From Diadema antillarum (taxonomy: Eukaryota), in contig NW_027272134.1 of NCBI RefSeq assembly GCF_040938485.1, forward strand, positions 1,178,001 through 1,242,000: a DNA stretch of 64,000 bases, given 5' to 3'. Every line of letters begins with the position of its first letter. The first letter of the stretch is position 1. Below, in pieces: positions 3,509 through 61,762 of this stretch. Both the position numbers and the translations under genes were made by a program. Below the pieces are notes generated by a model. The model ran no database searches. It was given only the letters and a program-made list of their open reading frames with translations, and was not told where the DNA came from.

Positions 3509-4693
3509 TCAGCATGATGAGGTGTGCACACCAGAGACACTTGTTTCTGTGTTTGACTGTTTAGATCTCGCCTCATTGTCATGTTCAGTTAGCGCTGCTG
3601 CACTCAAAAATCGCCTCAGAAATCTCGAAGGTTCTGGGATCCGATCTAAGTCACAGTGCACCATGCACCCAAAGACGAGCCGAAAGGTGGGATGTTTGAG
3701 GGCATAGATGATTGGATTCAGGCAGCTGTCAAAGACGAGAACCAGCGCAAGGTATGAGGAAACATGCAGAATTAAGCCAGGGGATTTCACAAAAGTCGTA
3801 GCAAAGAGGAGTGCCGTGTATGGCAGGACGCAGAGGAAAAAACCACAGATGACGTAGAGGAGGTTCTTGGTAATTGTGATGTCTAGCCGTGTGGGCTTGT
3901 GCACCTTTTTCTGACCTGGTTCTTTTTTGGCTGTCTCCCCTCCTTCTACCTTAGCTTTTTCCAGCGTTTCCCTCTTCTCTCTGGGAGTGGACGGAGCTTT
4001 GTTTGTGGTTGTCATGGTGTTGCGTACATGCTGCCTCACATGCCTGTATATGAAAAAGTAGCTCGTAACAATGAGGATGAATGATATCATGGCCAGAATG
4101 CCGGCCAGAATCTGGTAGATGTAAGCAGCAGGGTGCATAAAGTCCCATGCACATAGTCGGGAGTTGATGTCATAGCCAAGTTTTCCCTGTCCAGCAGCCT
4201 GTGGCACAACGAGCGTTACTATGGGATACGCCCATGAGAGGATGACCATGGCCGCCACTTTCGGAGCGGTATATATGCGCCTGTAATCCTTCCGAGATCT
4301 TGTGATCAGTATGTAACGGTTGATGGCGATCAACGCCAGGGTCAAGACGCTGCAGCTCACTGCTGTCACAACACTGGAACCGGCAATGGCGCAAATGACG
4401 GGATGCAGTGGCCATCCGCGCTCACCCAGCAAGCCCACTGCTTGAAAAGGCTGGACGATGGAGACCAGAAGGTCCGTCACACTCAGGCTGACGATGAAAA
4501 CGTTCGTGGCTGTCTGGAGCTTTCGGGATAGGAGAACTGCGGCCATCACAAAGAGATTCCCAACTATACCCACAACTCCGATGATGCAATAAAGGGTAGC
4601 CAAAACGGCCCTCTCTGCGTAGTTTGAGATTCCCTGTGATTCCAACCCACTGTTCCATGGGGCTGGAGAGGTACTGAATGACTGAAACTCCAT
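3509..4693 (-). CDS. Class A (rhodopsin-like) GPCR, NRY-type (Moody/Tre1/GPR84/melatonin-receptor-like), 394 aa, single coding exon
   Basis: Seven hydrophobic helices; GN in TM1, LSVTD in TM2, INRY at the end of TM3, LCAWD in ECL2, NPIIY in TM7. The ORF-track start at 4771 is TTG; the first ATG is at 4693, downstream of a strong splice acceptor (ttctttttctttctcag ending at 4784), implying a spliced 5' UTR. Confidence 0.9.
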   Translation of the reverse strand: MEFQSFSTSPAPWNSGLESQGISNYAERAVLATLYCIIGVVGIVGNLFVMAAVLLSRKLQTATNVFIVSLSVTDLLVSIVQPFQAVGLLGERGWPLHPVICAIAGSSVVTAVSCSVLTLALIAINRYILITRSRKDYRRIYTAPKVAAMVILSWAYPIVTLVVPQAAGQGKLGYDINSRLCAWDFMHPAAYIYQILAGILAMISFILIVTSYFFIYRHVRQHVRNTMTTTNKAPSTPREKRETLEKAKVEGGETAKKEPGQKKVHKPTRLDITITKNLLYVICGFFLCVLPYTALLFATTFVKSPGLILHVSSYLALVLVFDSCLNPIIYALKHPTFRLVFGCMVHCDLDRIPEPSRFLRRFLSAAALTEHDNEARSKQSNTETSVSGVHTSSC

Positions 4694-25673: not shown

Positions 25674-27036
25674 CTGACACACCATACATTATCTTTATCT
25701 TTCTATAGGGAATTCAAAACCTCATGGTTTTTCTTTTTTCTTTGTCTATTGATATCACATCACTTTTCCTTGCTAGATGCTGTTTCATCATCAGTCAACC
25801 TTTGCATTACAGCTATACCTAAGCTCTCCTCCTTTCATATTTCTTCTAAAGGAGAATTCAAGCCCGGTTTCAGATCGACTGTTAGCAGAAATCAATTTTG
25901 TGTCATTAGGTCTAATTCATCCCTAGAAATATCCATAGGTTTCGTGCATTGCTCTTCTTTCACAAAAGAAAAAGATAAATGAATAGAAAAATAGACTAAA
26001 AGAAGTGAAGTGGGAGACAGAATGAGAGGTAACAGTACACAAACATTCTCTCCTTTTCATTTCCTTGGACCATTTCCAGGTCAGGTCTACTCAATGCCAA
26101 AATTACTTTCTATCCAATCTGACACAGTCACCTACTCACATCAATGTGGTGTATGTCAGATTTGATTGACCCAGTTCATATCAATGGCAGTCTTTGTGCA
26201 CCCACCCACCACTCTGACCATGCCACTGTGCCCTCATTCTGTGGATGTGTCGTATACCAATTTCCAATTAACCCTCTGCATTGTGTGTTCGTGTGTGTGT
26301 TTGTGTGAGAGGATAGGTCTGGAAAAAGATCACATTTACAGTTTTTATTTCCTTTATAAATCTGTAAACTTGAGTGGGTGTTAACATCCCACTTTACCTG
26401 ACCCCTTTTCCCCCTAAATTCATTTATTCATGGTGTCAAACACCACCCTGAAATGTTAGTAGCCCTGATAGCAAAGATATGCCATCAAATCTTTTCGGAC
26501 TGTATCTGATTACTCCAGTGTATGATATTGTAGCTCACACGAAAGGTAGATGACTCTTTACGCCCAGTCAAAATAATCCAGGACAAGTCTGCATTGCACA
26601 ACCAACAGATGTTTGAGGAAATGGGTCGCAGAGGGGGGTCACATGTATTACGTCTGACATGAAACTGTGAAGGTGCTTGGTACATCATGTACAGTAGGTT
26701 CAAGTGTGTTTCCATGTTCATATTCTAAGTACAAAGTGCGCATGTATGTGTATGGTGATATTTATTCTCACAAAAGTCACAAAAAGGGTTTCTTTTTTGT
26801 TGTTGTTGAATGCAATATATGAATATGGACATGTAAAAAACAGATGGCTTTTATTGCCAATGATATGATGTGAAATGATTGCTAGACCTATGTTGAGTAG
26901 GTATATTGTATAAGGTTGAGGTTTGCATTCTGATTAAGTCATGAAAGTCAAATTCCTTTCAGTTACAGTGAAACCCAAAAGAAAGAATGACAAAAAACTT
27001 AACTGATATATCCATACTATTGCACAATTTCTTTAA

Positions 27037-27121
27037 CCTGTTGAGGACGGACTGATTTTGCTACAACACACATTTTCCATAGACACCTACCAGAGTACAC
27101 TCGGGACTCATCCTCAATGGG
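27037..27121. mobile_element. 85-bp piggyBac-like MITE (same family as 59202-59286, opposite orientation)
   Basis: TTAA-CCTGTTGAGGACG...CATCCTCAATGGG; internal sequence is the reverse complement of the 59202 copy. Confidence 0.7.
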
Positions 27122-29148
27122 TAAACCAAGCTGTAAAAAAAAAATGAAGAGATAATATATGGTAGAATGGCCTGAGGATGATATAATTAGGAAAACATGA
27201 TGTCCACTTGTACAAGTACACTTCTAGCTGTCTCTAGTATTGAACAACTAACAGATTTTATAAAAGCATTTAATATCTTTTGAGGTAGTTGGAAACAATT
27301 TCATATTGTTTCCACTGCCATACTTTTAACTGCACCCTAATTAAAAATGTGGACACATGTGATCAAGCAATTCTGTTCCATTCAGGTGTGCATAATCATG
27401 CTATTTTCCAACCCACAGCTATGATGCAAAACATATATTAGCATTACTGCCAAGGTAAAGTGACATGCACGTTTCTGAATAGTGGACTGATATCGGGAGA
27501 ATCTGTGATATCCTTGTGGTATATCATATCACGCTTGTTTACGATATTTGGAAATGAAAATGATTTGCATTAATTTTTGTTCTATGAAGTATAGGCCTAA
27601 ATCCCAACATACATTTAGGTCCACATTGTATCTAATGTACATTGCATATCTGGTGGTATGGTAGAGCACTATGCCAAAGGTATTATCTGGAAAAACAAAA
27701 CAAAACAAAAACATTGAGTTAGTCATGCTTATATTACTGTGTGTTTAATCTACTGCATATTATTGCACCAAGATATCAGAATCATATCATGACTTATCAA
27801 TGTTGAAACAGCTGCATAATCATTAAATTTAGACAAATGAAATGCAGATAAGTAGGCAACATGAACACATGAACATGAACATACATGAAAAAAAAAAGAC
27901 TGCTGTGCATTTCATTTATAGAATGAGTTTGTTGTGATAGCATGACACAACATTGTGGCACAGCATCTCAAACTACTCCTCTGACTATAATGGGGTCAAG
28001 AGTACTTCAGTTTACATCCTGATATAAATAGTGAAACGAAAATATTGTTTTCCATGAAGCGTGCCTGCAGTGATATGGATGATAAATGAAAACACAAAAG
28101 CAAGATGATATGTGAAGTGCTTTTATTTTTAAGTCTATCCTCATCTGCAGGTACTGACTCTCATTTCCCATAGAGTGAAATCAATGTTTAACCCGTCCAA
28201 AACATTTGCTTACTTCACAAGCAAACATGGCTCTTTATGGCATCAGATCTTATCCAGGATTTACTGGAAATACAGCACCAAATGTCTTAATGATGAATGA
28301 ATATTGATTTGCTGTCCTGTAGCCAGGCATTTTAACAAAAAAAAAAAAAAAAATTGCTCTAGATCTTTAAGAAATTCCTCTCAGGAATATGAATGAATTC
28401 TTACAAGCTGTCATTTTGTTTGATAGAGTTTTGGTCATTTTACTATTATATGAGCATTTGAAATTGAAGATTTCATTCATTTTGAAGGACCTGCTGATAT
28501 GTTGGCAGTGAAAGTGCCTTTAGCGATTATTTCAGCTTTTCTCTTTTCAATGACTTGTTGCAGTATTGTGTGGCATGTCTGCAAAATAGGTCACTCTCGA
28601 AGGAAAGAAACCCCCTTTTAGGCGACTGGAAAAGGTCAGAGTTTGTTCCAGCAGGTCTTTTCCACATACACCGTCTAACTGGAGATATTTTGGGCATGGT
28701 CTTTAATGGGCTGAGTTCAAAGTTTTTAACGAGTAATTCACAAAATAATCCCACTGGGCAGCTGTTTGTCTGGCCCAGGAAGGGTTAACCACACTCACAG
28801 GCAGGGGGAAATGTGAGAATATGCCCGAAGACAATAATTGCAAGTGAAATCACACCGGGTGTTTTTCAAGCAGGTCCTCTTGCTCTATTGCATTATGAGT
28901 CAGGCTTCCTCCTGACTGGGGGGAAGAAAGGCAAATAAGTCAAGTCACAGGAATGATATTGGCAATTTCATTTTTTTGAAGGGATCTTCACAGTCACTGT
29001 ATGAAACACAGCAAATGTATTAAAAGATGTCTGACATTTTAATAGGGGGGTGGGTGGGGAGGTGTTGGAACATTGTCAGTAGACATCTACTTGAATGTCG
29101 CAATCCATTGGGAAAGACTTTGTAACAACCATTTTTTGCTGATATTAA

Positions 29149-29231
29149 CCCACTGAAGACTAGTCCTGTGTACACTTGGGCAGGAGTCCTTGGGATATGT
29201 GCTATAGCAAAATCAGCCCATTCTCAACGGC
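29149..29231. mobile_element. Degenerate copy of the 85-bp piggyBac-like MITE
   Basis: TTAA-CCCACTGAAGACTAGTCC...TTCTCAACGG, colinear with the 59202 copy. Confidence 0.55.
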
Positions 29232-43902: not shown

Positions 43903-44640
43903 CTACTCTGAGCTGTAAGGATTCAAAGTTTTTGGCTACAATTTTAGGGTTATCTGACGGGGAAAGTGATGGACGCATTCTCCCAAAAACCAACTTTCTT
44001 CCATTTACTCATGGCTTTTGGAGTAGTCTATGATATAATAATGGTAATGATTTTGTTAATGAAAGTGATAATATGATGAGGATGATGTTGATAGTGATTA
44101 AAATAATGCTAAAGCTAATTATATAGTTGATTATGATGATTCCATGATTGATGTAGACATTTTGTAGTAAAGATGACTCCAGGACTTGATGAAACAGAAT
44201 GATGTTGGCTCTACTTCAAAGTTACGGACTTTTAGCAGCACTCAGCGAGGTTTAAAATATTTTTCCATTATGCAGCATTTCACAGTTTGTAGATTATATT
44301 TAGTATATACTGTGTAAGCAGTTTTGCTAAATTTTTTCCTTTTTTTCTCTCCAAAAGTGAGGGATGGGTTAAAAATCTTGGGAGGTTGGAGAGTATATGT
44401 GTGGAATGCTAAAATTGAAATCATAGAAAGCAATGTGCAGTCATCATGGTATCCGGAGAATTATTTGATTTGATCAGATTAACCCCCCCCCCCCCCCTTA
44501 ATATTTTCTGTTTGAATGTAGTGAAGAGATGTAGGGTCATGATGACGACTAAAATCTGATGGATGTAGCCTATATATTTCTACCAGCAGCTGTCTGATCC
44601 CCCCACCCCCATGTAAGTTTAGGTCTGGGTTATGTTTGAT

Positions 44641-44672
44641 CAAGGAGCTTCAAACACATGGAGATACAACGC
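44641..44672 (+). repeat. Left terminal inverted repeat CAAGGAGCTTCAAACACATGGAGATACAACGC
   Basis: Exact reverse complement of 58818-58849. Confidence 0.97.
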
Positions 44673-44785
44673 TCACTTTCCTTTAGAAGTAAGCTGTGAT
44701 GCCGCCGTCGTAAAACAGTGGGTGGTTGACCCTTATCTAATCTACTGGAATGTCACTCTGACCGCAATTCGAAAGCCCCGCGGAA

Positions 44786-44873
44786 AAATACGTCATCGGA
44801 AGTCAACGCTCTCGCAATGCATTGTGGACAAATACGTCATCGGAAGTCAACGTTCTCGCAATGCATTGTGGAC
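44786..44873 (+). promoter_or_regulatory. Subterminal 44-bp direct repeat x2 upstream of the PHD gene, containing ACGTCA (CRE half-site) and CGGAAGT (ETS-type) motifs
   Basis: AAATACGTCATCGGAAGTCAACG(C/T)TCTCGCAATGCATTGTGGAC twice with 1 mismatch, in a CpG-rich segment about 140 bp upstream of the ATG at 45010. The regulatory role is inferred. Confidence 0.6.
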
Positions 44874-45009
44874 GCGAAGCGATATTCGGTGATGTTTAGC
44901 CATACAGCTCTATGGCGATACTGTACTGTAGCGTGTATTAGCTAGCTAACTCATCGCGCTCGTTAATTGCTTGACAAGCTTCCGTAATTCCGTGGCGGAC
45001 AAAACAAAA

Positions 45010-45262
45010 ATGACTTCGTCTTCACTGACACTGGATGATAGAGACGTGATATGTATTTGTTCCATCCCCAAAACATCTAATCTCATATCCTGTTCTAATG
45101 TTTCGTGTACAATCGGTATTTACCACTCCGAATGTGTTGGACTGCAGCTGCACGGGCACGGGAGTGCTGGAAAATCGGATTGGTTTTGCGAGTTATGCGA
45201 TGCCGATGAGACAGACGACGTATTGGAAGGGGATGTTGAACTTAATTCGGAAACTAAAAAAG
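45010..45262 (+). CDS. Exon 1 of accessory gene (PHD finger and acidic stretch)
   Basis: CIC-x10-C-x4-C-x5-H-x2-C-x15-WFCELC; ATG in aaaATG context; donor AAG|GTACCG. Confidence 0.85.
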
Positions 45263-47633
45263 GTACCGTTGAATTCATTGTTCTTACTGAGTGATATCAT
45301 TACAAAAAAAAAAAAAAAAAATTGATAGGTACAGTCAGTGTCAGCATATGCAGCTGCAGGAGGTGGTGGTCTGGATGATCGCTGAGCAAGTTTTTTTTTG
45401 AACACTGAAAGTTGGATCATTTGAGCTGTAGACTTTACAATACGAAAACCAAGGAGCTTCAAACACACTGTTTGAAGCTCCTTGAAATCCCTGTCTGCCA
45501 CAGATAATATTTTCTGATAATTGATAGTACTTCAGAGAGGTATTAAATAGTAGCCAGTTAATACTTGATTTATAATAGACCTACCACGTCACTAATATTA
45601 ATGATAATCATTTCCATTTGAAAAAAAAATAATAATAATGTGTCTCCAAAAGAAATAGTTACACTTACAATAATACAAATTAATGGTTACAGTAATCAAA
45701 TAACAGTCGTGATGCAATGCTGATTAAAAATAAAAATGATAAGTAATTTACCAATGATAAAAATAATTTAAGCGATAGTCATAAGGATACTGCAGTTACT
45801 GCTGCTGCTAACAAGAAATATGATGGGGGGGGGGGGTTGGTGTCGGGCTTGTATTCAGGGAAAATTTGATATCCGAGTATGTCATTGCAGAATCATTGCT
45901 ACAGTACATGGCATGAACAAGTCTTAAAATGAAAATCCCATAATTTTTATTGTCAATAATGATCTACCTACAGCGTACTAGTAGTGTATTTGACTACTAG
46001 TAATAGTATGTCGAAGTGGCTTTGCACCCTCAGCCTGATTTTGTTTAGGAGCTGACGGAGGGCTCTTGAGAAAAATTAATAAAATGACAAAAATTCTCTT
46101 TCCTTTTCTCTATAGTTATACTTGCTGCTTTGTGCTTGTATGTTTTATTTGCATGTATCAAAATATTAATAGGTCCAATAGGAATCAAGCTGATTACCTC
46201 TTCTTTAATCCTCATCTTCAGATGACCATATGGAACAATCATATGAACAGCATGAACCAGGATCTTCGTCTGATCAACAACCGAAACTGCCTAAGCAACA
46301 ACAGAAGGTGATTCCATGTAAGTACAAGTGTATACCCAAAATTGGGTCCAATTCTGGTCATTTAAGGAAGAGCAATTTGATGAATTTTAAAATCAAAAGG
46401 CATACATGTAGTTCTTAAATGTAACATTGAAAAAAAAATTGAGGAAAAAATAGAAATGACTGGTACTTCACAAATTTAGTTGGTGAATTTAAAAGTACAT
46501 GTATATGAGGTTTCATTCTTTTTTTCCCCCATTTCAATCTAATTTCTCTTTCATCAACAACGTAAACTATATATGTACATTTCTTAATGAAGAAAATTTT
46601 TAAAGCCTGTTGTCCTTTTTCTTTTCTAGTGCACGGCTCCAAGGTCGTTAAGAGTGTCATGGAAGCAGGGTACGACATCTATAAGGAAGCACTTGAAAGG
46701 GCACAAAAGGATGATCATTTAAAAAACTACCCTACAGGCCGAGAAGTCATTAGAGTTTGTGAACTTTTGTTAAAGTCCCCGACCGATGAGAGCAGGAAAT
46801 CAGCCCTTGGACTTGTTGAGAGCGTACATACTTGTGCATGTGCTGGTGATGCATTTCCTGTTGGACCAGCAGCCAACGAGAAAATTTGCAGTGCCTTTCA
46901 CCGCCTTCGAACGCAGACATCTCTACAACATACCTGGCAGACACTTCTTCTTCAGAGCAACATAACATCCTCACCCCAAACTTCACATCTTTCACTTCAG
47001 TATATACTGCGCCAACTTCTTCACATCATCACACACCGGAGACTCATTCAGCCCGATGAAATCCAGACTGATGACTCAGCAAATCTCACAGAGCATGATG
47101 AAAATGTCTTGAGATATGTGGCTGGCTACATCCCTTTCGCATTAAGTAAAAGATACACCAAGACAAACTCCAAATTCTACAGGACTTTACAATCTTGGAG
47201 GGGTTCAGATGAAGACATTGTTGCAGATACATTTCTTGAGTACACATGTACTTGGACGAATCTTGTTAATAGAGGGGGGCTTTTCCGTGTTAAGGACAAT
47301 GTTTACATGCTGTTCCGGGCCATGGAAATTCAAACAAAAAGAACACTTAATATGAATCTTGCTCAATCTCCTGACCTTGGAGGCTTGTTGACCAAAGCTT
47401 TACTGCAAAGTGAACATGTTCTACATTGTTGGACCTCCCTCATTGAAGATTTGACTGAAAGTGAAGCACAAACATTGCTGCTTACTGTTGTAAGATACTG
47501 GGTAAAGATCAGGGTTAATGCCTTTGTACGAGTGTTTCTAAATCTACGCAAAGAGGAACAAGCAAAGAAAAAAAGGAGTAAGAAAATAGCACGCAAAGGA
47601 GAAAAGAGTTTAAGGAAAACTCTTCAGAAGTAA
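45010..47633 (+). CDS. Transposon accessory gene: PHD finger + acidic linker + P-transposase C-terminal-like domain, 450 aa; exons 45010-45262, 46222-46317, 46630-47633
   Basis: Canonical GT-AG introns with matching phases (1 and 1); 253+96+1004=1353 nt with no internal stop. C4HC3 PHD in exon 1; YVAGY, RGGL and KIRV motifs in exon 3. Confidence 0.85.
45450..45484. repeat. 35-bp TIR-to-TIR hairpin (putative excision footprint)
   Basis: CAAGGAGCTTCAAACA-CAC-TGTTTGAAGCTCCTTG = first 16 nt of the TIR and its reverse complement; flanks are not duplicated. Confidence 0.85.
46222..46317 (+). CDS. Exon 2 of accessory gene (Q/E/S-rich linker)
   Basis: Acceptor ctcatcttcag, donor T|GTAAGT; phase-compatible with exons 1 and 3. 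Confidence 0.75.
46630..47633 (+). CDS. Exon 3 of accessory gene (P-transposase C-terminal-like domain)
   Basis: Acceptor ccttttcttttctag; long ORF with ENVLRYVAGY, WTNLVNRGGL, YWVKIRV and a basic tail. Confidence 0.88.
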
Positions 47634-48986
47634 TGAGCGAATCATTTGTGACAATCAGCAACATTGTCCTTAATTTCTACCGGTAGTATAATCTGGGATC
47701 ATTGATGTCAAAAAAACAAAAAATTTTTCAGTTATACAGTTTGAAGTACAACTTTGGTCAACATTCATTCCTAAAATTAAGAACAGATGGAGAGGAGAGC
47801 AATTGTCCATGTATAACAACTGATGAAGCTAAATGCTGTAATGCTGTGATTATTCATGGAATCTTTATTAATGGTGCCTGTCAGTATTGTACGTTGTAAC
47901 ATTGTACATCCATCCTTCAGCAAGCTTTGTATTTGGCAATACACATATTAACAGAAAAGAAGTTTGTTAATGTATACATTAAAAACAGCTAGCACAATGA
48001 AATAGATCCCTAAGTGTTCATTGATTAACCATTCTGGTCACTTCATCTACAGGTCCATTCTTTGCTAGAATACGAGTTTCATAAATTGCTATGTTGGGCA
48101 AGCTGCTGCATTATATCGCTTTGAATTGAGTTAAGTGCCTAACCAACGGAGAAAAATGAAGGGTCGTTTGTACCCATGTGCACATGAGATATCCCCGATC
48201 TGGCTTGGTCCGTACGCTGATACCACCCAGCAGTTACCTGGCAACAGGGTGAATGCACCTGCAATAATGTTGTATTTGCATAGTGTGTTATTGTACAGTG
48301 AACGAGGAGTCTCTCTATTTCTCTCTCTCCTGTTCTTTCTCACCATCTTTCATAATCGCTGCCCCCTTCTTCTTTGTTTTTCTTTCTTAGCATCACCTGC
48401 GTTCCTGTCCGTGTATGTTTTGTTGTGTAACTGTTTTTGTTGTGTAAAATTAGGTTGTCTTGTTGTAAAAACTCTTAATTTATTTATCTTTGTATGAGGC
48501 CCCAATATCAAGTTCGGCTTACTGGGGATCCTCCTGTATGGTACCTTGACTTTTTTGTTTGTTATCATTATGTGTTCGTTCTTTATCACTATGATTTGAT
48601 TACCTGTCATGTGCAAAATCAGCCATAAATTATTATAAATCATGTGTTTACATCTGAAAGTGATCAGAGTTGATTATGTTGTACCATGCAGAAACAATAA
48701 AATGAAATGAAATGAAATGAAATAGTGTTATAGCTTACAATGTTATATAAATTATCTACAAACGAAACAGAATATGACCACTAAAATAATGATGATAATG
48801 ATGATAACAGCTCTGATAAAGATGCATCAATTTTAGATGTAACAAAGATATATTTGACAGCTTGTCCAGTCACAATGCAGGTCTCAAGTAACAGCTTTGC
48901 AGTTGTATTGCTAGACCTTGCCAGTATGTACTAAATGTTGACAAGATACATTTTCATTTTGCAAGTGAAAATTGCCATAGATAATA

Positions 48987-49168
48987 CAGTGCACTCCCGT
49001 TATAACGAACACGGTTATAATATTCCGGTCATAACGAAGTAAAAATTTGGGCTGCAATGTCATCCACTGCATGTATTTCTATTGTTTATTTTCGGTTATA
49101 ATGAAATTCCGATAATAACGAAAGAAAACTGCCGGTCCCGAGGACTTCGTTATAACGGGAGTCCACTG
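48987..49168. mobile_element. 182-bp Tc1/mariner(pogo)-type MITE nested in the P-like element
   Basis: 23-bp TIR CAGTG(C/G)ACTCCCGTTATAACGAA with TA on both sides. Confidence 0.8.
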
Positions 49169-50096
49169 TACTTAAAAAAAAAAATACTTGAAAAAAAAAA
49201 TTCTTAAACCTCCTTCAGACACGATTTGCAATTATCACACAGGTAGCTAAATAGACAGTGACATGAATGTGTAAGCTGATATAATTCGAAGACAAAGTAA
49301 ATGCATCTTTATCAGCAAATTTTGCACCATTCCTGTTCATCTGGAAAAAATAAATAAAATGTGCACATGGTGATGTCAGGACTGTACAGTGTTTATATTG
49401 ATCATGATTTTTTTTTTTTTTTGGTATGAAAGTTACATTGACAGAGCAAGAAGCAACATTCAAGTTGTTATTTATGATATGAAATCAATTATGAAATATA
49501 CAAATGCATAGCATATCACGACCTTTATTTGCTCTCGACAAGGAGCCTGAATAATGGAGAGAAAGAGAGAGAGAGAGAGAAAGAAAGGAAGAGGAGGGAA
49601 TGAGGGCTAGAGAAAAAGTATCAAAATGACAGGACATGAAATTAAAAGAGAAAAATTAGCATTTTCTTTCCCAACAAAAAGTAACAAGTAATCAGGGTCG
49701 GCGAAAAAACATAGCGTGTTTTGACACATGTTTTAAAACATGTCTTAAAACACCTTTTTTTTTTAGCAAAAAAAAAAAAAAAAATGTTTCGAAACACCCC
49801 ATTGACACATCTACTAAACATATGTTTGTCTATGTGAATTGTAATTTTCATTTTTTCAAATGCTTTTCTCCTGACCAGTGCATGAACATAAATCCAAAGA
49901 AAGTAGGAAATCTCTATCTTCTCCTGTATATCTCCCCTCTTTCTTTCTTTCTCTCTCCCTGTACCTCTCTCTCTCTTCCTCTCTCTCTTCTGCCTTTCTA
50001 GCTCTATCACTGACTCTCTTTTGCTCTTTCTCTTATATTCTCTATCTCTCCCCCTCCCACCTCTTTAACATTAGTTCTTCTCACATAAAACCATAC

Positions 50097-50119
50097 CAAG
50101 GAGATTCAGAAGCTCCTTG
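50097..50119. repeat. Excision footprint with perfect 7-bp TSD ACCATAC
   Basis: ACCATAC-[CAAGGAGATTCA GAAGCTCCTTG]-ACCATAC. Confidence 0.85.
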
Positions 50120-51013
50120 ACCATACTAATATTCATATGAAATGTGATACAGTGTATGATTATTTTACAACTCTAGATCCCTGTAACACCTCCTCAATCA
50201 TGATGAAAAGCAGCACAAGTCAATTTTTTTTGGTGATAAATTTGTTACTTTAATAGCATGCAACGCGATATTTCATGACCGTATACCCAGATATGCAATT
50301 CGAGAGTCATGCAACATTTAACAAGTGCATATCAAGCCCCAAATTTAAAACAAACAAAACAAACCCAAAAAAAAAAAAGAGCTTTCACCTACAAATCCAA
50401 TGCAATTTCTGTTGTTAGTCAGAATTCATAAAGAATTATTTTCTTGGAGTAAAAATAAAAATTATAGATTTGTTGTTGATCGAAAAAGCGTTACTGACGA
50501 TTACCTTTAAAACAACACTAATAAAAGTTGAAAACAAATAAATACAGCTGTATACAGTATGAGAAAGTTATTTAAAAAATAAAATACTTGAGAGCAAGTG
50601 GTGGCCCCGCCCCGCCCATGTTTACTTGCATTCAGACTGCAATGTATTGTGTACAGTTTTGTTAGGTTTCTTGCGTGGAGAACTTACACAAATCTGTACA
50701 TGAGGGACCAAGGAGCTTAGCTTGGTGATCATACACACGAGTCAATTTTCATCCATTTCATCTAAGTCAATATAGTAAAATATGAAGTGAGAACATTCAG
50801 GATAGGGATTTCAACATCTTTGAATTCTGTGAAGGGGCATAGATCCAGTGATATTGGCCTCATAAATGAACTGTAAGTACATGAACATTGCACATTCAGT
50901 GCAGCAGTTGTAGCTGTTTATTCAGCACTAACAGCGGTGCAATGGGTCTCTAGTTAGCCGGAGCTAGCGGGGCAGGGTGCTAGGTATAGGACTAAGGAGC
51001 AATAAGGTGACAG

Positions 51014-51039
51014 TAAGGACCTTCAAACAAAGCTCCTTG
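51014..51039. repeat. Excision footprint with near-perfect 7-bp TSD
   Basis: GTGACAG-[TAAGGACCTTCAAACA AAGCTCCTTG]-GTTACAG. Confidence 0.75.
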
Positions 51040-52088
51040 GTTACAGTAGCCTCCTACCTGAAGCTGCACAGTTTCGGTCTCGAAGCTGAGGTACATGTAT
51101 GTTTGACTGTTGATCATTATCATCTAATAAACTATTATGATTTGAAACTTCGCATGTTCAATGTAGGTTTATCATAAAGCAAATGACTACAGTGATAGTT
51201 CAATTCTGTTTCCATGAGGAGCGTGCAAATAGAAGTCTATAGCATACTCGACGTGATGACAGGAATGGACATTCTGAAGACTGAAAATGTGGTCTAATAA
51301 CCTCAACCTATGTGCAAATCAGCAAAATTTCACATCAGAGATATGACCAAGATCTGAAGGGGGGCAATTTAACAATTTAAAAGCTGATTTCAAAAAAGCC
51401 TAGTTAAAGTAGGGTTAATCATCCTTTCAAAAGAAATGCATCAGAAAGGTCAATAACCGAGCTCAATTTTTTTGCCCATTGTATTGAATTGCACTTTTGT
51501 TCCGATTTCACACTGACTTTCAAATAAAATGGAAAATTTAAAGAACTCTTAGAATATACAAAAGAGATGCACGCTTCCATTTACAATTGACTAATTTCAC
51601 TCGTGAAATACAGTAAACGTTGCACAAGGTGACCTTCAAATCAAGTCCAATAGGTCTGCATGTAAGTCAATGCAATAGACATTATGTACGATGTGTCATT
51701 TCCTCGTACAGAAAAAGTCAAATCTTCTCTTTAAATTGAATAGATTTCTGTGATCCCAAGAAATGGATCGAGGCGTGGAGTTACTCGTATAATATCATTT
51801 GTTGAAAAATAATTACTGCTGCATACTCCATAGAAACATCAGTTGAAGTATTATCAGTTTTTTTCTCCAACATTTGTTTAGTCAAAGGAATAAGACTTCA
51901 TTAAGCAAACCAACCAAAAACAGGTTAGAGGAGTTCAAATCTTAGACTTAACATGCTTATTGCTGATTATTGTGCATGCCATGTGCTCGTGTAAATCTGG
52001 CTTCTTATTCAAGAAATAAATCAAAACGTTATTTCACATGTCGTGAAAACAAATGAGAATCACAGGCAAATGTCAAGATTGCAAACAT

Positions 52089-52375
52089 TCATCGCTTTCT
52101 CTTTCTACTCTGCAAAGGAGTAGAATCCACAGCAGTTTTTCGTTTTTGTGACTTCACATTAGCTTTTGCTGAGACTGCAATGCTTGAACCTGCTACATGC
52201 AGTGGCAGAATGTTTGAGCCAAACTGATGAACATCAGGGTTGTCAAACCGTCCTCCAACTCCTCGCTGACGACTGAAGTACTCTTCCAAAGGATCTTGGC
52301 TGAATTTTTCTGAAAGAACAAACTCCACACCATCCTCCAAGAGAAGCTCCTTGGCAAGTTGAACAAATGAGCGCA
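52089..52375 (-). CDS. Transposase exon 6 (catalytic Glu, SQDPLE; basic C-terminal tail RKRKR)
   Basis: Acceptor ttaataccacag; phase 1 restores VRSFVQLAKELL. Confidence 0.9.
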
Positions 52376-55300
52376 CTGTGGTATTAACAAGACACACACA
52401 CAAAAAAAAAATGTGAAAACACTCTGAAAGAAATGTTTATGGCAAAATAAAAGGGAAGAAAGAGCATATGATCATGGATGTTGTATTGACTAAGAGTAAT
52501 AAACCTGTAAAAAAAAAAAAAAAAAAACACAAAGTACAAAATATCTTGATAAGTTCATGCAATGAGCTTCTTTTTTAAGTTCCTTGGTTCATGCATGAAA
52601 GATAATACAAATCAATATACAAACCATGAAAAATCTCCAGAATTTAAATAACCACGCGAATATTAAGTGCAGGTAGAGAAGAAATGGGAATAAAACAAAA
52701 CATGTGAGTTCTTTATTGCACCTAACATTAGAAAAATGCAATGTCTCTTATCCATACTTTTTCCTTTTCTTTTCATTTTTTTATGAAATAAGGAATAAAC
52801 AAGAAATAGGAAATCATGTTTAGAACGTACATGTATTATAGTACATTTGCATGCATGTGTGTGTGTGTGTGTGTGTGTGTGCGTGCGTGTGTGTGTTTGC
52901 ATTCAAATTTGTCTGTTCTTGAAGATAATGTTCTTATTTTGTTCTAAATTGAACATGGAATTTGTATCAATACTAGTAGTTAAAAGTAGTTCTGAGAATG
53001 TCTGCGCTAATGTGGCAATGTGCATGTGCTATGTCTATGGTGCAATATAGGTAGCCATCTCTGTCAACCTACCCTGAGACAAACACTCTCCCAGGCCCAT
53101 CCCACCTCCATTGAACAAAACCTACAGCCAGTCGGGCACGCACAAACAAGCTCCGCCCACTTGGCCTGTCACTAAAATATTAAAGCAGCGATTGGTTGAC
53201 CAAGGAGTTCTGGCTTGACATGGATAAAGTATGGATGTGCTGTGTGTATGGATAAAGTATATGGATCGATGTGCTGTGTGTATACATGTATACATGTGTA
53301 TGTATTCGACATGCGTGCAGAGCGGTGCATGCTTACCTGCAGCGGGCCAGGGACGGGGTTCTTCGACATGCCGATTTTTTTGTTCTCTAAATGTAATGAG
53401 AATGCCAGACAAATCTTCTTCGGCTCAAGTGATGTAAACTACGTGTATTATGTACAAAAGGGACTGAATGTTTTACTTCGACACAGCCGAAATTCGACTC
53501 TCGTACTTCGGCTTATCCAAATATTTCTTAGAGAAAACACATAGGGAAAAATCGGGACTTCTTATTTTGCTTCGAGTTAAGTGATTTTCGACTCACTCGA
53601 CGTCGACTTATCCGAGGTTTACTGTACGTTATAATCACCTGTTAATCTCAGGCCATCAAGAGTTGCTTTACTGAGACACAGCTTCTGGCGATCAGCTGCC
53701 TTAAGACCGGGGACAAGCATGCCTTCAGACTCCCACTCATCCAGTAAGCCAAGGAAGTCTTCCTCTAGCCACTAAAAGGAAATAAATTAGAAGGAAATCA
53801 GATTATTAGGAATTAACACAGTCTGAAGCTCCTTGATAATACTCATATTAAAAAAAAAAATAATAATTTATGCAAAAGCCTTTCCCCCTTATTTAAAAAA
53901 GGGGGGGGGGGTGCAGCAGAAATTTTTCTTGTAGCTTAATGTTGGCCTAATGGAACACTGAGGTCTAGTTTCATCTGCTGAGGTCAATTAAAATGTGTAC
54001 TTGCACATGTATACCAGACTCCCTTTTGTCTTGAAGGGTTAACAACAAATGTGTCTAAATCTCCCAATTTTAACTTCTTCATTGTTCATCTACAAGTACA
54101 TCACAACATACCACAGAGCTTAAAACTGTTTTAAGCTCCTTGAACATACCAACAATCTCCAGTCATCCACAGATTTGTAAGGGGCAAGAGCTGGATTTCG
54201 GGATTTGATGTGCTGGGAGATGTTCGACACATTCATGCAGTCAAAGAACTGGTTGAAATATTCTATGAATGTGATGGTGCTGGATGTCTCCAATGGTTTA
54301 CTGCTTTGCTGTTGTTGCATCTTCAGAGCACTAGCCATAGATGTGCTGAGAACCTGTAAATAGAAAAAAAAGTTCAGATACATTCATGAACATTCCACTA
54401 TTTCTACAGACCCTGTGTGAAACAATTGGTGTGGGGTGTATGTGTGCAGGTGTATGTGTTTTGATATCGATTATCTAAAGATAAGAGTCTTACATGTACT
54501 ATTAATGGTAGATTATTTGAACCAAGGAGCTTAATTGTAGATTATCTGAACCAAGGAGCTTAAAACAGACGACTACTGTTTGAACATAAATGCATGTTCT
54601 ATAATTGAATACTTTGGAAAAATAAAAAAGCACTCAAAATAAAGCTATGATTTCACATAAATAGGACAAAAACACAGAAATCAATGAAATTAGATTACAT
54701 GCACAATTTAAGTTATTATAAGTACACATATTTTTAAATGCTTCAAGAGAAAACTAATCCACATTAACAAGGAGCTTGTTTGAAACTCCTTGACATTTCT
54801 GAATTTTGCTATTAACCCATAGAGGTACATGGCTTTGCACGGGTATAAATCAATCAGCTTTTTTACTTGAAATCCAATTTTGATGAGATTTTCAGCATTA
54901 TGCTTTTTTTATTTTTTTATTTTTTTATTCAAATCAACTTTTTGCTGGGGTGGACTTCCCCTTTAAGAGAAACTGCAAAAGTGTCTCCTCTGTGGGTTAA
55001 TGGATGTAGTGACAACCTTGCTTTGCTGCTATATGATGTTTACAGCAATTACATAATATTCTTACCTGTGCAGCAAGGGAAACTCGCATGCGTGATGAAG
55101 GAGTCAGGTTAAGATGTTCTGCGGTGATTTTGTTGAGCATTCGCAGTCCTTGTGCTGTACCATCTGGATTGATGTGCCCAGTGTCCCAAGCGTTGACATC
55201 AAGGATATGTCTCCAGGAAATTGGAGCACCTCTAAGCTACAGAGAATAACAAGTAATATTTAGAATTACCATCAAATGATCTTACACAAGAAACATAATG

Positions 55301-58300
55301 CTACACTAACAGAAATTGTCAAAGGAAATGATTTAGCACTATAATTAAGGACTAATAAGAGGCTACTTGGTGAATTGAAGTCTGAAACATTTTTTTTTTA
55401 TAAAAAACAAACAAACATATATATATGAAAAAAAAACAAACATATATATATGATATACAAGAATTCTTAAATCTACATGAATATCAAAAGTAAGAAATGT
55501 AAGACCAAGAAGTACTTTAGAGACATTACCTACGTGTACGTGATAATCTGAATAACTTTTCTACTGACACAGCATCATTACTATTTTGTACTTAGAGGAT
55601 GAATCAATTCGATAATTCCAAAACTATTTACCATCATATTTCTGGTGTTGTTATGGCTGCCAGAGTTTTCGAAGTTGTTTCTTGTTGTTTTGATCAGGTG
55701 AGGGACATCAGAGATAAAATATATCTTGTGGTCAGGGTTGAAGGGGTTTATTGTGAAGTGCTCTGAACTGCACAATTTGTAGAATTTCCTGTTTGTGGTG
55801 GCCCCATCTGACACAAATGCACGAACATGGAATCCTGCAAAATGCAGTCGCTCCACCCCCTCCCAGATAATGTGGTACAACTGATCGGCTGTCATGGCAT
55901 CACATGGAAAAAAACCAACTGGAGTGTGAAGATTATGAAAGATCCCTCGGATCATGATGGTAAGTGCATGTGTTGCAATGTTCTGCGTAGTGTTGTCTTC
56001 TGCCTCTTTTCGATACTTCAAAAGTTCATTGTTAATGTCTCCAAGGTCTGTAAATCCGACCAGTTTACCTCTTGACGTGTAGACAAGGCCTGATTTCACC
56101 TTCATTTCATCAAAGACGACCGATACATTTTTCTGATGGGGTGGCAGAGACTCAATGTTTATGTCCTTCGCAATCTTGGAAAGGAAGTCTGAAGAGTATC
56201 CAGGGTTGATGTCAAAGCAGTGTGTGTAGTTGAAGAGTGTGTTTTTATGGGGAAGGTGGAGATACCCGGAAGACCGAAGAAGGTCATATGCAGCAGGGCT
56301 TTTGGAGTGAATTGCAATGCAGAGGCGGAGAATTGAAGGATGCCAACGCATCTGGCGGGGTGGCTTTGTGAAAAACTTCTGTTGTTCCTCCCACAGAAGC
56401 TTTGCAGGTGACCCTTCTGGGAAGTCGGCATTGTGGGCTTGAAAAATATCCTTGAATGACTTGCTCACTTTCTTATCGATGATTTCCCCTTCCTTTCGGA
56501 TCATCTTGTGCAAGGACTTGCGTAGCCGCACTAAGTTCTCCCCCATGGCCTTCCTTTCCTTACTCATTTTTTCCAAGCGATTACGCATCTCCGTTTTTGA
56601 CAAGTGAGCATGTGGCTTGAAGCTTGACGTACTCGCTGTTTCTTTCTCCTTCTTTAACCTTTTGCGAAGAATGCCAAGATCCGTCCTGTAGATGGTACAG
56701 GTACCGCACCGTCCAACATCACCTTTGAGGATGGGGCAACTGTTGTGTCTCAATGACACATTCAGAGAGTCATATTTACTCGGATGATGGTATACAGGAC
56801 GGTTCATAACATCTTCTGGGCTAATATCACCAAAGTCTTCATTGCCTGGGCAGACATGTGACTTCATGATTGCTTCTAAAAACTCTAGAATCTGCGATGG
56901 AGACAAATTGGGCGGAAAATCTTTGAGAATGTCAATTCCCGGATCTATTACCTTGCCATAGTGGCGAACCCTCCAACTTCCGTCACAATTAATGATGCAG
57001 CATTTCTCCGACATGCCTTCATCATCCAACTCGACAATGATCACCTTCCCCTCTCTCTGATTGAACACCATCTTTCCTTGGAGCACATCCTGCGCATTCA
57101 TCACTGCATCTAGAATGCCACCATCTTCCTCTTCATGCGAAACACAATATTTGCAGTCCGGTGCATGAGGCTCAAAATCAGGAACAACAATGCTGATACT
57201 TGCAGTTTGCCTCTTTCGTTGCTTCTCACGCCATCTCGATAACTTCTTCGAGCAAAGCCCACAAACCGAAGGAGGATGAATATCATCAATGTCGAGAGAA
57301 ACATCGATGTCAAGAGCCCTTTTGATAACAGCAGACCATGTTGACTTTGCTTGGTGTCGCTTATTTGGCAATGTGATACCATCGCTACCACACAATCTAC
57401 AGATGTCCTGAAGTTTTTCCTTGTGTCTGTCCTTGTCGTCTAAAAAAACAATAATAACAATAACAACAACGATAATAATAACAGTAATAATAATTTTAAA
57501 AAAATAATTCTATAATAATTCGGTGATACTTAATCACATCAGTTTTCTAAAGCTCTATGAAGCTGAATATAATGTACACAACAAAATCACATATATTTGT
57601 TTTAAAAAAATCTTTTATGTGTCATGTTGTTTAATAGTATTTTATAAATTCACATGATAAAGTAAACCTAATATAATAAGAAAAATAACTGAATGAAATG
57701 AACATATAAAATTTCACATTTACACTTTGGTCACTATTCAATTATTTTTCAATAATCTAAAGCAAAACAAGCAACAAAATACTGGTTCAAGTGAAACATG
57801 ATGTAGCTCACAGGATATTGACTGAAATTATGCATGGGATCAGCGCACGGGATAGCCATTAAATTTACAAAGTTAGAGCGTCGATTCGGGTAAACATGCA
57901 GTCATTTGTACATCCACAAGAAGATTAAGATCGAGAACCTTGTCGGACTACAGTACGCCTGCTTGTACTTTGTTTTTAATGTTCTGAATGGAAGCTATGA
58001 ACATGTAAATTCCAGACCATGCGCCACATAGGCAGGCTGGAGGATTCAACTACCGATGTCATCTCAGTGACACTTTTGTACAGTCCCATATATAAGACTT
58101 TGAGTGATAAAAAAAGCTACTTTTAAATAGACGCTACGTAAACATCACACCAAAATGACTCACAAATATCACTTCTTCAACGATTATTTTCAATTGCAAC
58201 AACATAAAACATGAAAAAAATGTATGACCTACGGATAATTTTCCATAACTCGAGGAATACGAAACACAAGAGTGGAAAAAAAAGCTGAAAATCTCGGCCA

Positions 58301-58502
58301 ACAAGCATTCGAAACTCGGCTTTCCTGAAGTTGGCCGCTGCTGGCCGCAGTGCAGATGAAAGCGTTTGTAAAGACGAGACTTCGATCTTCAAATTCATAT
58401 ATTGCGCATCATGTGGATATTTGCGGAATTTTACTTATCATAATCATAACTTAGCTAATTAGATATTCATAAAAACACATGATAACATCATAACTCACCC
58501 AT
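52089..58502 (-). CDS. P-superfamily (THAP9-like core) DDE transposase with RAG1-N-terminal-like zinc domain, 868 aa; exons 58502-58499, 57439-55632, 55236-55066, 54353-54150, 53771-53639, 52375-52089
   Basis: All junctions GT-AG and phase-consistent (1,0,0,0,1); 2607 nt with no internal stop. P-type motifs RWHP..SPAAY..LR, VFDEMK, SDGA, SDVPHLIK, HLNL..MRVSLAAQVLS, FDCMN, FSQDPLEEYF..GG..DNP. Confidence 0.9.
52560..52586. repeat. Excision footprint with perfect 7-bp TSD GTTCATG
   Basis: GTTCATG-[CAATGAGCTTC TTTTTT AAGTTCCTTG]-GTTCATG. Confidence 0.8.
53639..53771 (-). CDS. Transposase exon 5
   Basis: Acceptor atttccttttag, donor G|GTGATT; WLEEDFLGLLDEWE...LSKATLDGLRLT. Confidence 0.85.
54112..54142. 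repeat. Excision footprint whose perfect TSD (AACATAC) is the splice donor of transposase exon 4
   Basis: AACATAC-[CACAGAGCTTAAAAC T GTTTTAAGCTCCTTG]-AACATAC; the reverse complement GTATGTT is the intron start at 54149. Confidence 0.85.
54150..54353 (-). CDS. Transposase exon 4
   Basis: Acceptor ttttctatttacag, donor G|GTATGT; VLS...FIEYFNQFFDCMN. Confidence 0.88.
54768..54792. repeat. Excision footprint with partly decayed TSD
   Basis: ACATTAA-[CAAGGAGCT TGTTTGAAACTCCTTG]-ACATTTC. Confidence 0.7.
55066..55236 (-). CDS. Transposase exon 3 (insertion/GTP-binding domain region)
   Basis: Acceptor ttattctctgtag, donor CAG|GTAAGA; ISWRHI...KITAEHLNLTPSSRMRVSLAAQ. Confidence 0.88.
55632..57439 (-). 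CDS. Transposase exon 2 (RAG1-like zinc domain, second Cys/His cluster, coiled coil, HTH-like region, first two catalytic Asp)
   Basis: Acceptor ttgtttttttag, donor ATG|GTAAAT; 1808-nt open frame. Confidence 0.92.
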
Positions 58503-58572
58503 TTTTTGTCCGATTTTCGTGATTTTTTTTGGAGAACGAAGAGAAAAGCCAGCAGAGTCGATTGAACATAAA

Positions 58573-58584
58573 TGCGCATGCGCA
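58573..58584. promoter_or_regulatory. Perfect NRF1-type palindrome TGCGCATGCGCA upstream of the transposase ATG
   Basis: Consensus match about 70 bp upstream of the ATG at 58502 in a CpG-rich subterminal region; function inferred. Confidence 0.55.
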
Positions 58585-58817
58585 TGGGATACCCCTACAC
58601 ACTGCGCAAGCATCGACATGCTACAGCTCCCCAGCCCACATCATGCTAACACGGTCGAGTGAGCAAACACTACAGCACCGAGCGGCATCATACCTCTCGG
58701 ATAAAGGAAGGGGAAATGGGACCCAGGGGACCAAGGGGACCGTGTTATCAGTGAAATATCTTTACTTTCTCCTCGCGCACTAATCCGCTGGCATGCTGTG
58801 CATTTTTTCCTGCTCCG

Positions 58818-58849
58818 GCGTTGTATCTCCATGTGTTTGAAGCTCCTTG
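58818..58849 (-). repeat. Right terminal inverted repeat (32 bp)
   Basis: GCGTTGTATCTCCATGTGTTTGAAGCTCCTTG followed by TSD GTTTGAT. Confidence 0.97.
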
Positions 58850-59201
58850 GTTTGATGTGATTGATGGAGAGTGTGCTGGTAATCTGTCAAGGAGGGAACA
58901 CAAATCCTCACAGATGGGATCAGATCCAGTTTGACTTGATTGATGTGCACATCCAGGGGTTTGGGAGATTTTGTTCTTATTGGCCATATCTTCCATCACC
59001 CTGTCAGAGTTAGTATGCCTCCCTCCACCTATCCAGTCTCAGATCAGTTTGCAGAGAGGGGTCATTGAACACTTTCAAGCTCCATTAGTCATCACTTCTG
59101 CACCTTATTTTTTTTTTCCAGCTCATCTCTGAGAAGCGAAGGTATGAATACAGATGCCCACTATTTTCGTTGAATACCTGTGATGTTGGGATGATCTTTA
59201 A

Positions 59202-59286
59202 CCCGTTGAGGACGAGTCCCAAGTATACTCGGGCAAGCGTCTATGGGAAATGCATTTTGTAGAAAAATCAAACCGTCCTCAACGGG
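59202..59286. mobile_element. 85-bp piggyBac-like MITE, cleanest copy
   Basis: TTAA TSD on both sides; perfect 13-bp TIR CCCGTTGAGGACG. Confidence 0.85.
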
Positions 59287-59414
59287 TTAAGGAAGCTGAC
59301 ATTTTCAAATACCATGATATCATACAAAGAAAGCTCTCAAGAAGAACAGAAACAGATTCAAATCAAAGCAAATGACCACTTTCCATCTCCCACCCTTCCT
59401 ACAAACTGAACATA

Positions 59415-59624: not shown

Positions 59625-60235
59625 TAATACCCTCCCCCTCCCCCCCCCCCCCCTTACACAGACGTTCAGTACCAGCACCTTTCAAATGTTTTCATTGAGT
59701 ATGAAAAAGTGTCCAGAAACAAACTACGCGTGTATGCTGTCGGTTCCAATTCCTGAATTGTGCTATCATCATGATTTATGCATCGAAAAAGAAATGTAAT
59801 ATCGGTCTTTAACTGCACCATGACTGCCATGTCTACCATGTGGTTATTGTGTCAAAAATATATTTGATAACACCGCACTGGATGTATATCCTGTAGAAAA
59901 GGTGTTGCTATACGTATATCTAAATGTTCATTACTATATAGCAGCACTACAGTTGTCATTCATGTTTTGAAATTGCCATATATTTGCAATTCCATAACAA
60001 CTTCACCATTTTTGTGCTGTTATTGAGTGTATCAAAATGTGACAATTTCAAGAAACAAATTAGTTCAGTGTTATACATATATTTTGACTTTATTTCTGTG
60101 TGATTAGGCCCAGAAAACATTTTGCAGGATAACTTCATTACCAATAACCACTAGCTACTATTCAATGAAACATTATATTCAAAGGCATGATTTACCATTT
60201 GCAGATGAAACAAAACCCCAGCATTAGTGCTCTAA

Positions 60236-60320
60236 CCCGTTAAGGACGAGTCCTCAGTATACTCGGGCAGGTGTCTATGGGAAATGCTTGTTGTAGCAAA
60301 ATCAGTCCATCCTCAACGGG
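60236..60320. mobile_element. 85-bp piggyBac-like MITE copy
   Basis: CCCGTTAAGGACGAGTCC...CATCCTCAACGGG, colinear with 59202-59286. Confidence 0.75.
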
Positions 60321-61762
60321 TTGAAATATTTCTAAAATGTGAGTTAGGGATAGAAATGACCAATGTAAAAAATTGAACCAGTATAATCAATGTTAAGTAT
60401 TGGTAGATATACAAAATGTGAACAATAGATATGATAAAATTGTTTCCAGACTATAAACCATCTACAGTTACGGTTTTATGAGAAAAAATAGTGATATCTC
60501 CTTATATTTTAGACTTTATTGCAAAAATTTTATATGGTAGGATGTTTTGTGATACAACTGACCTACAGATATGCATCAAAAGTGATATCTTGAACATTTT
60601 TTAAAGCACTGCTCTCAAAGGTAAACCGGACCTTTAATCTGCAATCAGCAGACATTGAAGGGCATGTATCTGTCTGTATGAATGTTTTCTTGGTTTGATC
60701 TTTTTATATACAATTAAAGAGAAAAAACAATCTCAGTCTGATAACTTTTGTCAAAAACAAATCTCCCAAAAAGCCCAGTTTTGATATTTATGATGTAAAG
60801 AGAACAGCACATGATTTTAATTCCAATGGTGTTATTGGTATAATGTTTACAATGATAAAGTTCTACCTTTAAATGATGGTAATGAAAATAAAGTTAATAT
60901 GAAGACTGTCATGACTCTGATGCCATCAACATAGAAGAATATTAGTAGAATCAGTAATATGTCATTTTGTGTGACCAAATATGACAGCTATAATGAGGAA
61001 TTTCATTGTGTCTTTGTTAGTGGTACGATGAATTCGATTTTGCATCTTTCATAATCATATTATCATGTAGCATGCTTTGTCAGCACAAATACTGCTTCCC
61101 TTCCACAGAAGTCATGAATGATCTGACTAAAATTCTTGCATGTCTTAGACTCAGCACTACAAATAAACTTACAATGTACCTTTAAATGATTGTCAAATTC
61201 TTCTTCTTTTATTTTTGCCAGATATACTGTCAGCCAGATATACATTGTATACTGTCAGATATACTGTCAGCGTGTAACGTGTGTGTGTGTTTGTGTGATA
61301 TTAGTGCAAAATTTAAACTGTCTTTTTTTTTCTGATGAGGGTAATTTTGTTTTAACGCGCTAATGGCTTATGACACTCCAGATTGAGCCAAGTCTGAACA
61401 TTGAGCATACTATATTAATAGACACTCTCCCCTTGAAGGGTCGTGATGTGCCGAAGCAGGTGTGTTTTCAATTTTCAGCGTTATTGAAGAGACATGGCAA
61501 GACAATGTATTCATGAAACAATTAAGAAGTCTTAAAGGGTATATGACTGTAAACTACACTAGTATGTATGTCATTCATCATCCCAGATGAAGAAAATTAT
61601 TAAGAAAAATTGCATTTTCACCTCATACTTTTCCGTCTTCATTCTTTGAATGCTGTATCATGCAGCAAAGACAGTGTTATTACTTACGAATGAAAGTGCT
61701 ATTCATATGTTAATATTCATTTCGACACGTCTAAGGTGCTTCAGTGAGAGTATTGGAGAATA

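Follow-up and report, generated by a model that had tools for sequence, protein, structure and literature searches.

A P-superfamily transposon of the urchin Diadema antillarum whose transposase is probably made in two pieces by two convergent genes

In textbooks the P transposase figures as an enzyme made of one protein; humans carry a relative of it, THAP9, of unknown function. The best-studied members of this group, the Drosophila P element (87-kDa transposase, structure 6p5a) and vertebrate THAP9/Pdre2, combine a split RNase H fold with DDE residues and a GTP-binding insertion domain. The C-terminal domain (CTD) of P transposase is all-helical and is tethered to the rest of the protein by a flexible, disordered linker (PMC7776569). 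Cut-and-paste transposons that encode a second protein in addition to the catalytic subunit are found among PIF/Harbinger and the RAG-like elements (ProtoRAG), and in ProtoRAG the two genes, RAG1L and RAG2L, are convergent (PMC7204232). A search of the literature, with Repbase reports outside its scope, returned no published P-type element with two open reading frames and no detached Tnp_P_element_C domain.

The element described here, from Diadema antillarum, shares with the P element and THAP9 the catalytic fold and the insertion domain, terminal inverted repeats (TIRs) of about 31–32 bp, a target-site duplication (TSD) of the 7–8 bp class, and introns; it also has scars compatible with a long staggered cut. 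It differs from Drosophila P and THAP9 in that the CTD is a separate, convergently encoded protein, and in that the N-terminus is a RAG1-type zinc finger, where theirs is a THAP domain. From the Drosophila P element it differs further in the length of the TSD, 7 bp as in the P-superfamily members 1360 and Galileo (PMC3698922) rather than 8 bp, and in size, 14 kb rather than 2.9 kb. The possession of a second element-encoded protein is a likeness to PIF/Harbinger and ProtoRAG, and the convergent arrangement a further likeness to ProtoRAG; however, the catalytic folds and the partners of those systems are unrelated to the ones found here, and the second protein in the present case corresponds to a segment that the best-studied relatives carry covalently within the transposase itself. 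An N-terminal RAG1-like zinc-finger module is also present in Chapaev (the Chapa domain), but the catalytic core of Chapaev belongs to the Transib/CMC lineage, whereas the core here is P-type. A RAG1-N-terminal-like region is likewise common to this element, to N-RAG-TP of Aplysia, and to the sea-urchin proteins of Kapitonov and Jurka.

The transposase gene lies on the minus strand of the window (the whole stretch of 64,000 nucleotides that was analyzed). P0001, an 868-aa “uncharacterized protein” of D. antillarum at NCBI, is 100% identical to the 604-aa open reading frame that adjoins 52089–52375, and a six-exon model on the minus strand translates to P0001 exactly. Its features are as follows.

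58499–58502, minus strand: exon 1, coding end (ATG and a G, then a GTGAGT donor); the model reproduces P0001
55632–57439, minus strand: exon 2, a RAG1 N-terminal zinc-finger-like domain (CRLCG at 57401), then the N-terminal part of the RNase H fold; from Pfam and PDB matches
56111–56109 and 55808–55806, minus strand, in exon 2: the codons of D445 and D546; from the 6p5a_A alignment
55066–55236, minus strand: exon 3; from the P0001 model
54150–54353, minus strand: exon 4, the end of the GTP-binding insertion domain (PF21788); from Pfam and the P0001 model
53639–53771, minus strand: exon 5; from the P0001 model
52089–52375, minus strand: exon 6, the end of the RNase H fold with Glu804, a 64-residue tail with a KRKR end, and TGA; from Pfam, the 6p5a alignment and the P0001 model

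Between the right TIR and exon 2, the sequence ATGG|GT occurs only once. The last coding exon, read on the minus strand from 52375 to 52089, is bounded by an AG acceptor at 52377–52376 and a TGA stop at 52091–52089. The order of domains in P0001 according to Pfam is an N-terminal RAG1_imp_bd domain, in place of a THAP domain (for which Pfam gave no match in P0001), followed by the TNP-like RNase H-N, the GTP-binding insertion domain, and RNase H-C. The corresponding matches of the exon translations are PF21787 (E=8e-26), PF21788 (E=4e-9), and PF21789 (E=9e-5). Among solved structures, P0001 aligns with the Drosophila P transposase (chain A, 6p5a_A) at E=3.9e-23, and residues D445, D546, and E804 align with the catalytic D230, D303, and E531 of that enzyme.

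The original prediction held that the transposase stops about 65 aa after the catalytic Glu and lacks the YxAGY and GGL motifs, which would instead be found in the convergent gene. Both points agree with the gene model. The SQDPLEE motif corresponds to residues 799–805, with the Glu804 codon at 52286–52284, and the protein continues for 64 residues past this Glu to end in ...DSTPLQSRKRKR (...SRKRKR) at a true stop codon; the KRKR end of this tail resembles a nuclear-localization signal. A scan of the whole of P0001 found no AGY, GGL, or RGG string. The alignment between P0001 and 6p5a chain A runs to residue 555 of 569, and the gene is thus split at the disordered linker, where the depositors of the structure broke the chain.

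The sequences of its relatives show the short end to be a clade-wide character, the fixed architecture of a large clade and not a peculiarity of this locus. When the catalytic half of the protein served as the query and proteins of up to 1519 aa were allowed, 143 relatives were returned from urchins, sea stars, crinoids, holothurians, brittle stars, a hemichordate, lancelets, mussels, hydrozoans, corals, anemones, and Ciona. None of these 143 transposase relatives has a precomputed match to Tnp_P_element_C (PF12596) or THAP9_C (PF22824). C-termini were counted in 118 sequences; the catalytic-Glu motif is present in 59 of them, and the C-terminus is complete in 58 of these 59. Every one of the 58 complete relatives stops 53–127 residues past the Glu (within 80 residues in 57 cases), most of them directly after a (D/E)xPLPKRK-like tail, and YxAGY and NRGGL motifs occur in none. 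The three long members (1012–1292 aa) have their extension at the N-terminus, not at the C-terminus. The gene fission that had been proposed for this locus therefore stands only in part: the CTD is indeed encoded by a separate gene, but the split is a clade-wide architecture and not an event at this locus. The direction of the change may have been fission, or it may have been fusion in the P/THAP9 lineage.

The convergent gene on the plus strand, hereafter the partner gene, had been expected to hold the missing CTD. It consists of two exons, the model of which translates exactly to the protein P0013.

46230–46317, plus strand: partner gene exon 1; from the two-exon P0013 model
46630–47633, plus strand: partner gene exon 2 with the stop codon; from the P0013 model, the product being all-helical with a basic tail

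P0013 is a protein of 363 aa that contains RYVAGY (47112–47129), NRGGLF (47268–47285), and a strongly basic C-terminal tail. Pfam contains no family that matches P0013 alone. A phmmer search of the PDB with P0013 yielded only a chance match, the homology being visible only by way of family profiles and the fold model. The partner family comprises 4751 clusters at 50% identity (E<=0.001), and the best 150 of these 4751 clusters are all stand-alone proteins of 171–535 aa. A profile of 123 members of the partner family matches 6p5a_B, the separately deposited chain of the P-transposase CTD, with E=0.021; the alignment consists of two collinear stretches, which place the RYVAGY of the partner on YIAGY of the fly protein and NRGGLF on HGGLIK. 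The AlphaFold2 model of P0013, built on the family alignment, is entirely helical with a mean pLDDT of 87.2. Foldseek compared this model with the PDB and found 6p5a_B at a probability of 0.97 (TM 0.68, target-normalized; rmsd 5.2 Å; E-value 0.97), the other matches listed having TM values of at most 0.19 and rmsd values of ~17–29 Å. Relatives of the partner score 15.6–20.6 bits against Tnp_P_element_C, below the 22.6-bit cut-off, in matches centered on the YVAGY region, and precomputed matches to THAP9_C (PF22824) exist for the partners at loci L006–8 (unmarked) and at loci L009–11 (weak).

Each of these lines is modest singly, but because the profile, the model, the Foldseek match, Pfam, and THAP9_C combine, the homology of the C-terminal half of the partner to the P/THAP9 CTD is well supported. 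Alignment with the P protein, the check that had been suggested, gives a matching catalytic triad in the transposase, whereas the C-terminal domain of P and THAP9 is absent from it and encoded by the convergent gene. The partner does not consist of a CTD alone: a further ~150 aa of helical sequence make up its N-terminal half. In addition, an N-terminal PHD finger is found in some partners and C2H2 fingers in a few (L004:8579–8866, P0016, P0017). The PHD finger of some partners recalls the PHD finger of RAG2 in ProtoRAG, the other convergent two-gene transposon.

Both genes lie within a 14.2-kb DNA transposon at 44641–58849, an intact member of the P superfamily with the following boundaries.

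44634–44640, no strand: left 7-bp TSD, GTTTGAT; an identical 7-mer abuts both inverted repeats
44641–44672, plus strand: left TIR, 32 bp, starting with CAAGG; 32/32 complementary to 58818–58849
58818–58849, minus strand: right TIR, 32 bp; 32/32 with the left repeat
58850–58856, no strand: right 7-bp TSD, GTTTGAT; matches the left 7-mer

The TIRs and the TSD of 7–8 bp that characterize the P superfamily are therefore present (32/32 and 7 bp). The classical P feature of a CTD in the same polypeptide is absent, this domain being in the convergent gene. The same 31 nt of the TIR are found in another urchin at L001:4663–4693, where the flank differs. Constraint on the TIR is far stronger than that on the coding sequence, since between the window and L001 it is 31/31 identical and the partners are only 43% identical.

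Host genes flank the insertion, namely intronless open reading frames for rhodopsin-family G-protein-coupled receptors (GPCRs) at 3509–4771 (minus strand; 7tm_1 E=2e-46) and 37918–38997 (plus strand; 7tm_1 E=2e-34). Tandem repeats with units of ~565 bp and ~195 bp and 83–91% identity are found at 18183–19310 and 36007–36740. A dispersed repeat of ~90 bp (27029–27125, 40216–40309, 59196–59294, 60230–60326, 14240–14329, and 29146–29235), present in both orientations at 75–87% identity, is probably a MITE or SINE that is unrelated to the P-like element. Some 0.7 kb to the left of the element, 254 consecutive N (43649–43902) mark either an assembly gap or a masked stretch.

The first 10 nt of the TIR (CAAGGAGCTT) have 13 exact occurrences in the 64-kb window against 0.17 expected, and 18 occurrences when up to one mismatch is allowed. 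All 18 fall within 44641–58849. Short palindromes made of two TIR tips occur at the following sites, here and in related elements.

45450–45484, no strand: mini-palindrome of 18 + 17 nt of two TIR tips; candidate excision footprint without a preserved duplication
50097–50119, no strand: probable excision footprint of 11 + 11 nt of TIR tips; ACCATAC on both sides (7/7)
52560–52586, no strand: probable excision footprint in intron 5; GTTCATG on both sides (7/7)
54768–54792, no strand: TIR-tip mini-palindrome in intron 3; flanking 7-mers match at 5/7 positions
51030, 54133, and 54523–54561: further TIR-tip mini-palindrome sites
L001:9698–9719: TIR-tip mini-palindrome at L001; CTGATAC on both sides (7/7)
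L003:9056–9077 and 14990–15015: mini-palindromes of the tip sequence of L003 itself

Because perfect 7-bp direct repeats flank several of the mini-palindromes, these are probably the excision footprints of kin elements that were once inserted in this element. The same direct repeats disfavor the interpretation of CAAGGAGCTT as internal transposase-binding sites or as a generic repeat. The P transposase makes a 17-nt staggered cut inside its repeats (PMC7776569), and the 11–18 nt that the footprints keep of each TIR tip are compatible with such a cut. It is possible that the confinement of the footprints to the element reflects self-targeting, or else accumulation along the lineage of the element.

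The association of partner and transposase was examined at about ten loci, and the two genes are found as a tail-to-tail pair at L001, L003, L004, L005, L006–8, L009–11, and L012.

L001, another urchin-like genome: the same 31-nt repeat in another flank; partner 43% identical; the last transposase exons convergent with it
L003, a Diadema paralogue with a transposase 33–38% identical: the pair lies between its own related repeats (starting with CATGG), with a 7-bp TSD, GTGAAAC
L004, L005, and L012, ENA assemblies: tail-to-tail pair
L006–8, one ENA assembly: a 5.5-kb two-gene element; copies 99.9–100% identical with differing flanks; a clear 7-bp TSD in L007
L009–11, one ENA assembly: a 4.45-kb two-gene element of the THAP type in three copies, all flanked by a perfect 7-bp TSD

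At L002, no partner is found within the 2.8 kb of downstream sequence that make up the whole available flank. The copies within L006–8 and those within L009–11 are 99.9–100% identical to one another and have differing flanks, and perfect 7-bp TSDs are seen in four of these six copies (L007, L009, L010, and L011). At L006:14819–14845, one 5.5-kb element lies directly against a piece of the terminal repeat of another copy; this is a nested or rearranged insertion, in which the TSD is unreadable. Since the pair recurs, including in near-identical copies with 7-bp TSDs, the two-gene layout is the structure of autonomous, recently mobile elements, and it is combined with two or more kinds of DNA-binding domain at the N-terminus. 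This domain varies within the clade, being RAG1-type in many members and THAP or ZAD in others. In Acanthaster, the transposase (LOC110988468) and the partner (LOC110988470) have neighboring numbers and are both on a contig of 398 kb, probably the same one; in Apostichopus, too, the two proteins come from contigs of equal length. A comparison of transposase identity with partner identity across seven loci shows weak co-divergence (rho 0.50, from 21 non-independent pairs).

We propose that the element probably specifies a P-type transposase made in two pieces by two convergent genes, in which the partner joins the dimer and both proteins are needed. The catalytic subunit, encoded by the minus-strand gene, would bind the transposon ends, presumably via its zinc-finger N-terminus, and would dimerize and cut. 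The partner would dock in trans, non-covalently, at the position that the CTD occupies in the fly complex, and would supply contacts to the looped-out transposon strand and to the target DNA. Both proteins would be required for excision and for integration. We infer both the physical association of the two proteins and the dependence on the partner. In our assessment such dependence is, on balance, likelier than an accessory or targeting role, since in Drosophila only the full-length protein transposes and a 66-kDa form without the C-terminal third is a repressor (PMC7776569).

An alternative that we regard as unlikely, although worth serious consideration, is that the short transposase is self-sufficient and that the partner is a CTD-related accessory or regulatory protein, such as a repressor, a targeting factor, or a chromatin reader. 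Such a role could be consistent with the flexible linker by which the Drosophila CTD is tethered (PMC7776569), and the PHD or C2H2 fingers on some partners suggest chromatin or DNA targeting. The partner also diverges faster than the transposase, with 43% identity between the window and L001 as compared with ~79%. However, an accessory role is disfavored by the need for the full-length protein in Drosophila transposition, where the 66-kDa form represses, and the partner is present in every examined element with a long enough flank.

It is also conceivable, but quite improbable, that the host has domesticated the two genes as a pair and that they no longer form a transposon. The element is present as a single copy in the window, P0001 is found on one contig, introns have been acquired, and the size is 14 kb, all of which could point in that direction. 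Yet the 32-bp TIRs are perfect and accompanied by a 7-bp TSD, the TIR is conserved at 31/31 positions in another urchin with a differing flank, the sister elements are multi-copy and near-identical, and footprints of kin elements are present, which together argue for a transposon. Lastly, an annotation artefact, in which a further exon (the downstream exon named as a possible refutation of the original prediction) would provide the CTD in cis, is conceivable in principle in a gene with five introns, where a 3′ exon might be unannotated, but is effectively excluded because the short end is clade-wide (58/58 homologues in many phyla end 53–127 aa past the Glu, mostly with a PLPKRK-type tail), because intronless relatives (a single open reading frame of 886 aa at L009–L011) end identically and have the partner on the opposite strand, and because an HMM of the partner family, run against the six-frame translation of both strands of the window, found no other partner-like coding segment, the minus strand having none and the sole CTD-like coding sequence lying on the opposite strand.

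Residues ~1–100 of P0001 (57439–57150) constitute a RAG1 N-terminal zinc-finger (NZD/Chapa-like) domain, which matches PF12560 (RAG1_imp_bd, E=6e-9) and the RAG1 NZD structure 21wb_A (E=3.4e-5). A protein of this kind, N-RAG-TP of Aplysia, was reportedly described by Panchin and Moroz in 2008. Secondary sources describe N-RAG-TP only as RAG1-N-terminal-like, and the element described here is probably related to it. RAG1-N-terminal-like proteins of sea urchins were described by Kapitonov and Jurka in 2005 (PMC1131882), and both of their motifs, H-x3-L-x3-C-R-x-C-G and D-x3-I-h-P-x2-F-C-x2-C, are present in P0001.

According to papers of 2015 and 2026, the RAG1 NZD module is confined among transposases to RAG1L and Chapaev, the 2026 preprint stating that, besides RAG1L, only Chapaev retains it consistently. 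A coherent P-type clade with a RAG1-type domain thus appears to be unrecognized in these sources. Because the 2026 preprint limits consistent retention to RAG1L and Chapaev, this clade bears on the origin of the non-core region of RAG1. A more far-reaching proposal, which we consider possible but rather doubtful, is that the P-type transposase is an obligate two-subunit enzyme, that the clade is a third, unrecognized transposase lineage in possession of the RAG1 NZD/Chapa module, for which it would be a candidate donor or sister, and that the P superfamily could have started from the split state, Drosophila P and THAP9 having arisen by fusion.

If the transposase is indeed made in two pieces, these elements would be a widespread natural version of the P system in which the DNA-contacting CTD is a separate subunit, which would mean that the CTD can act in trans. 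Action in trans fits the cryo-EM structure, where the CTD sits between domains from different subunits. The elements would then offer a ready-made system for dissecting the role of the CTD, and the P superfamily would become one of the few cut-and-paste superfamilies in which a second protein is essential. The partner genes, which number in the thousands, are now labeled “uncharacterized” by annotation pipelines.
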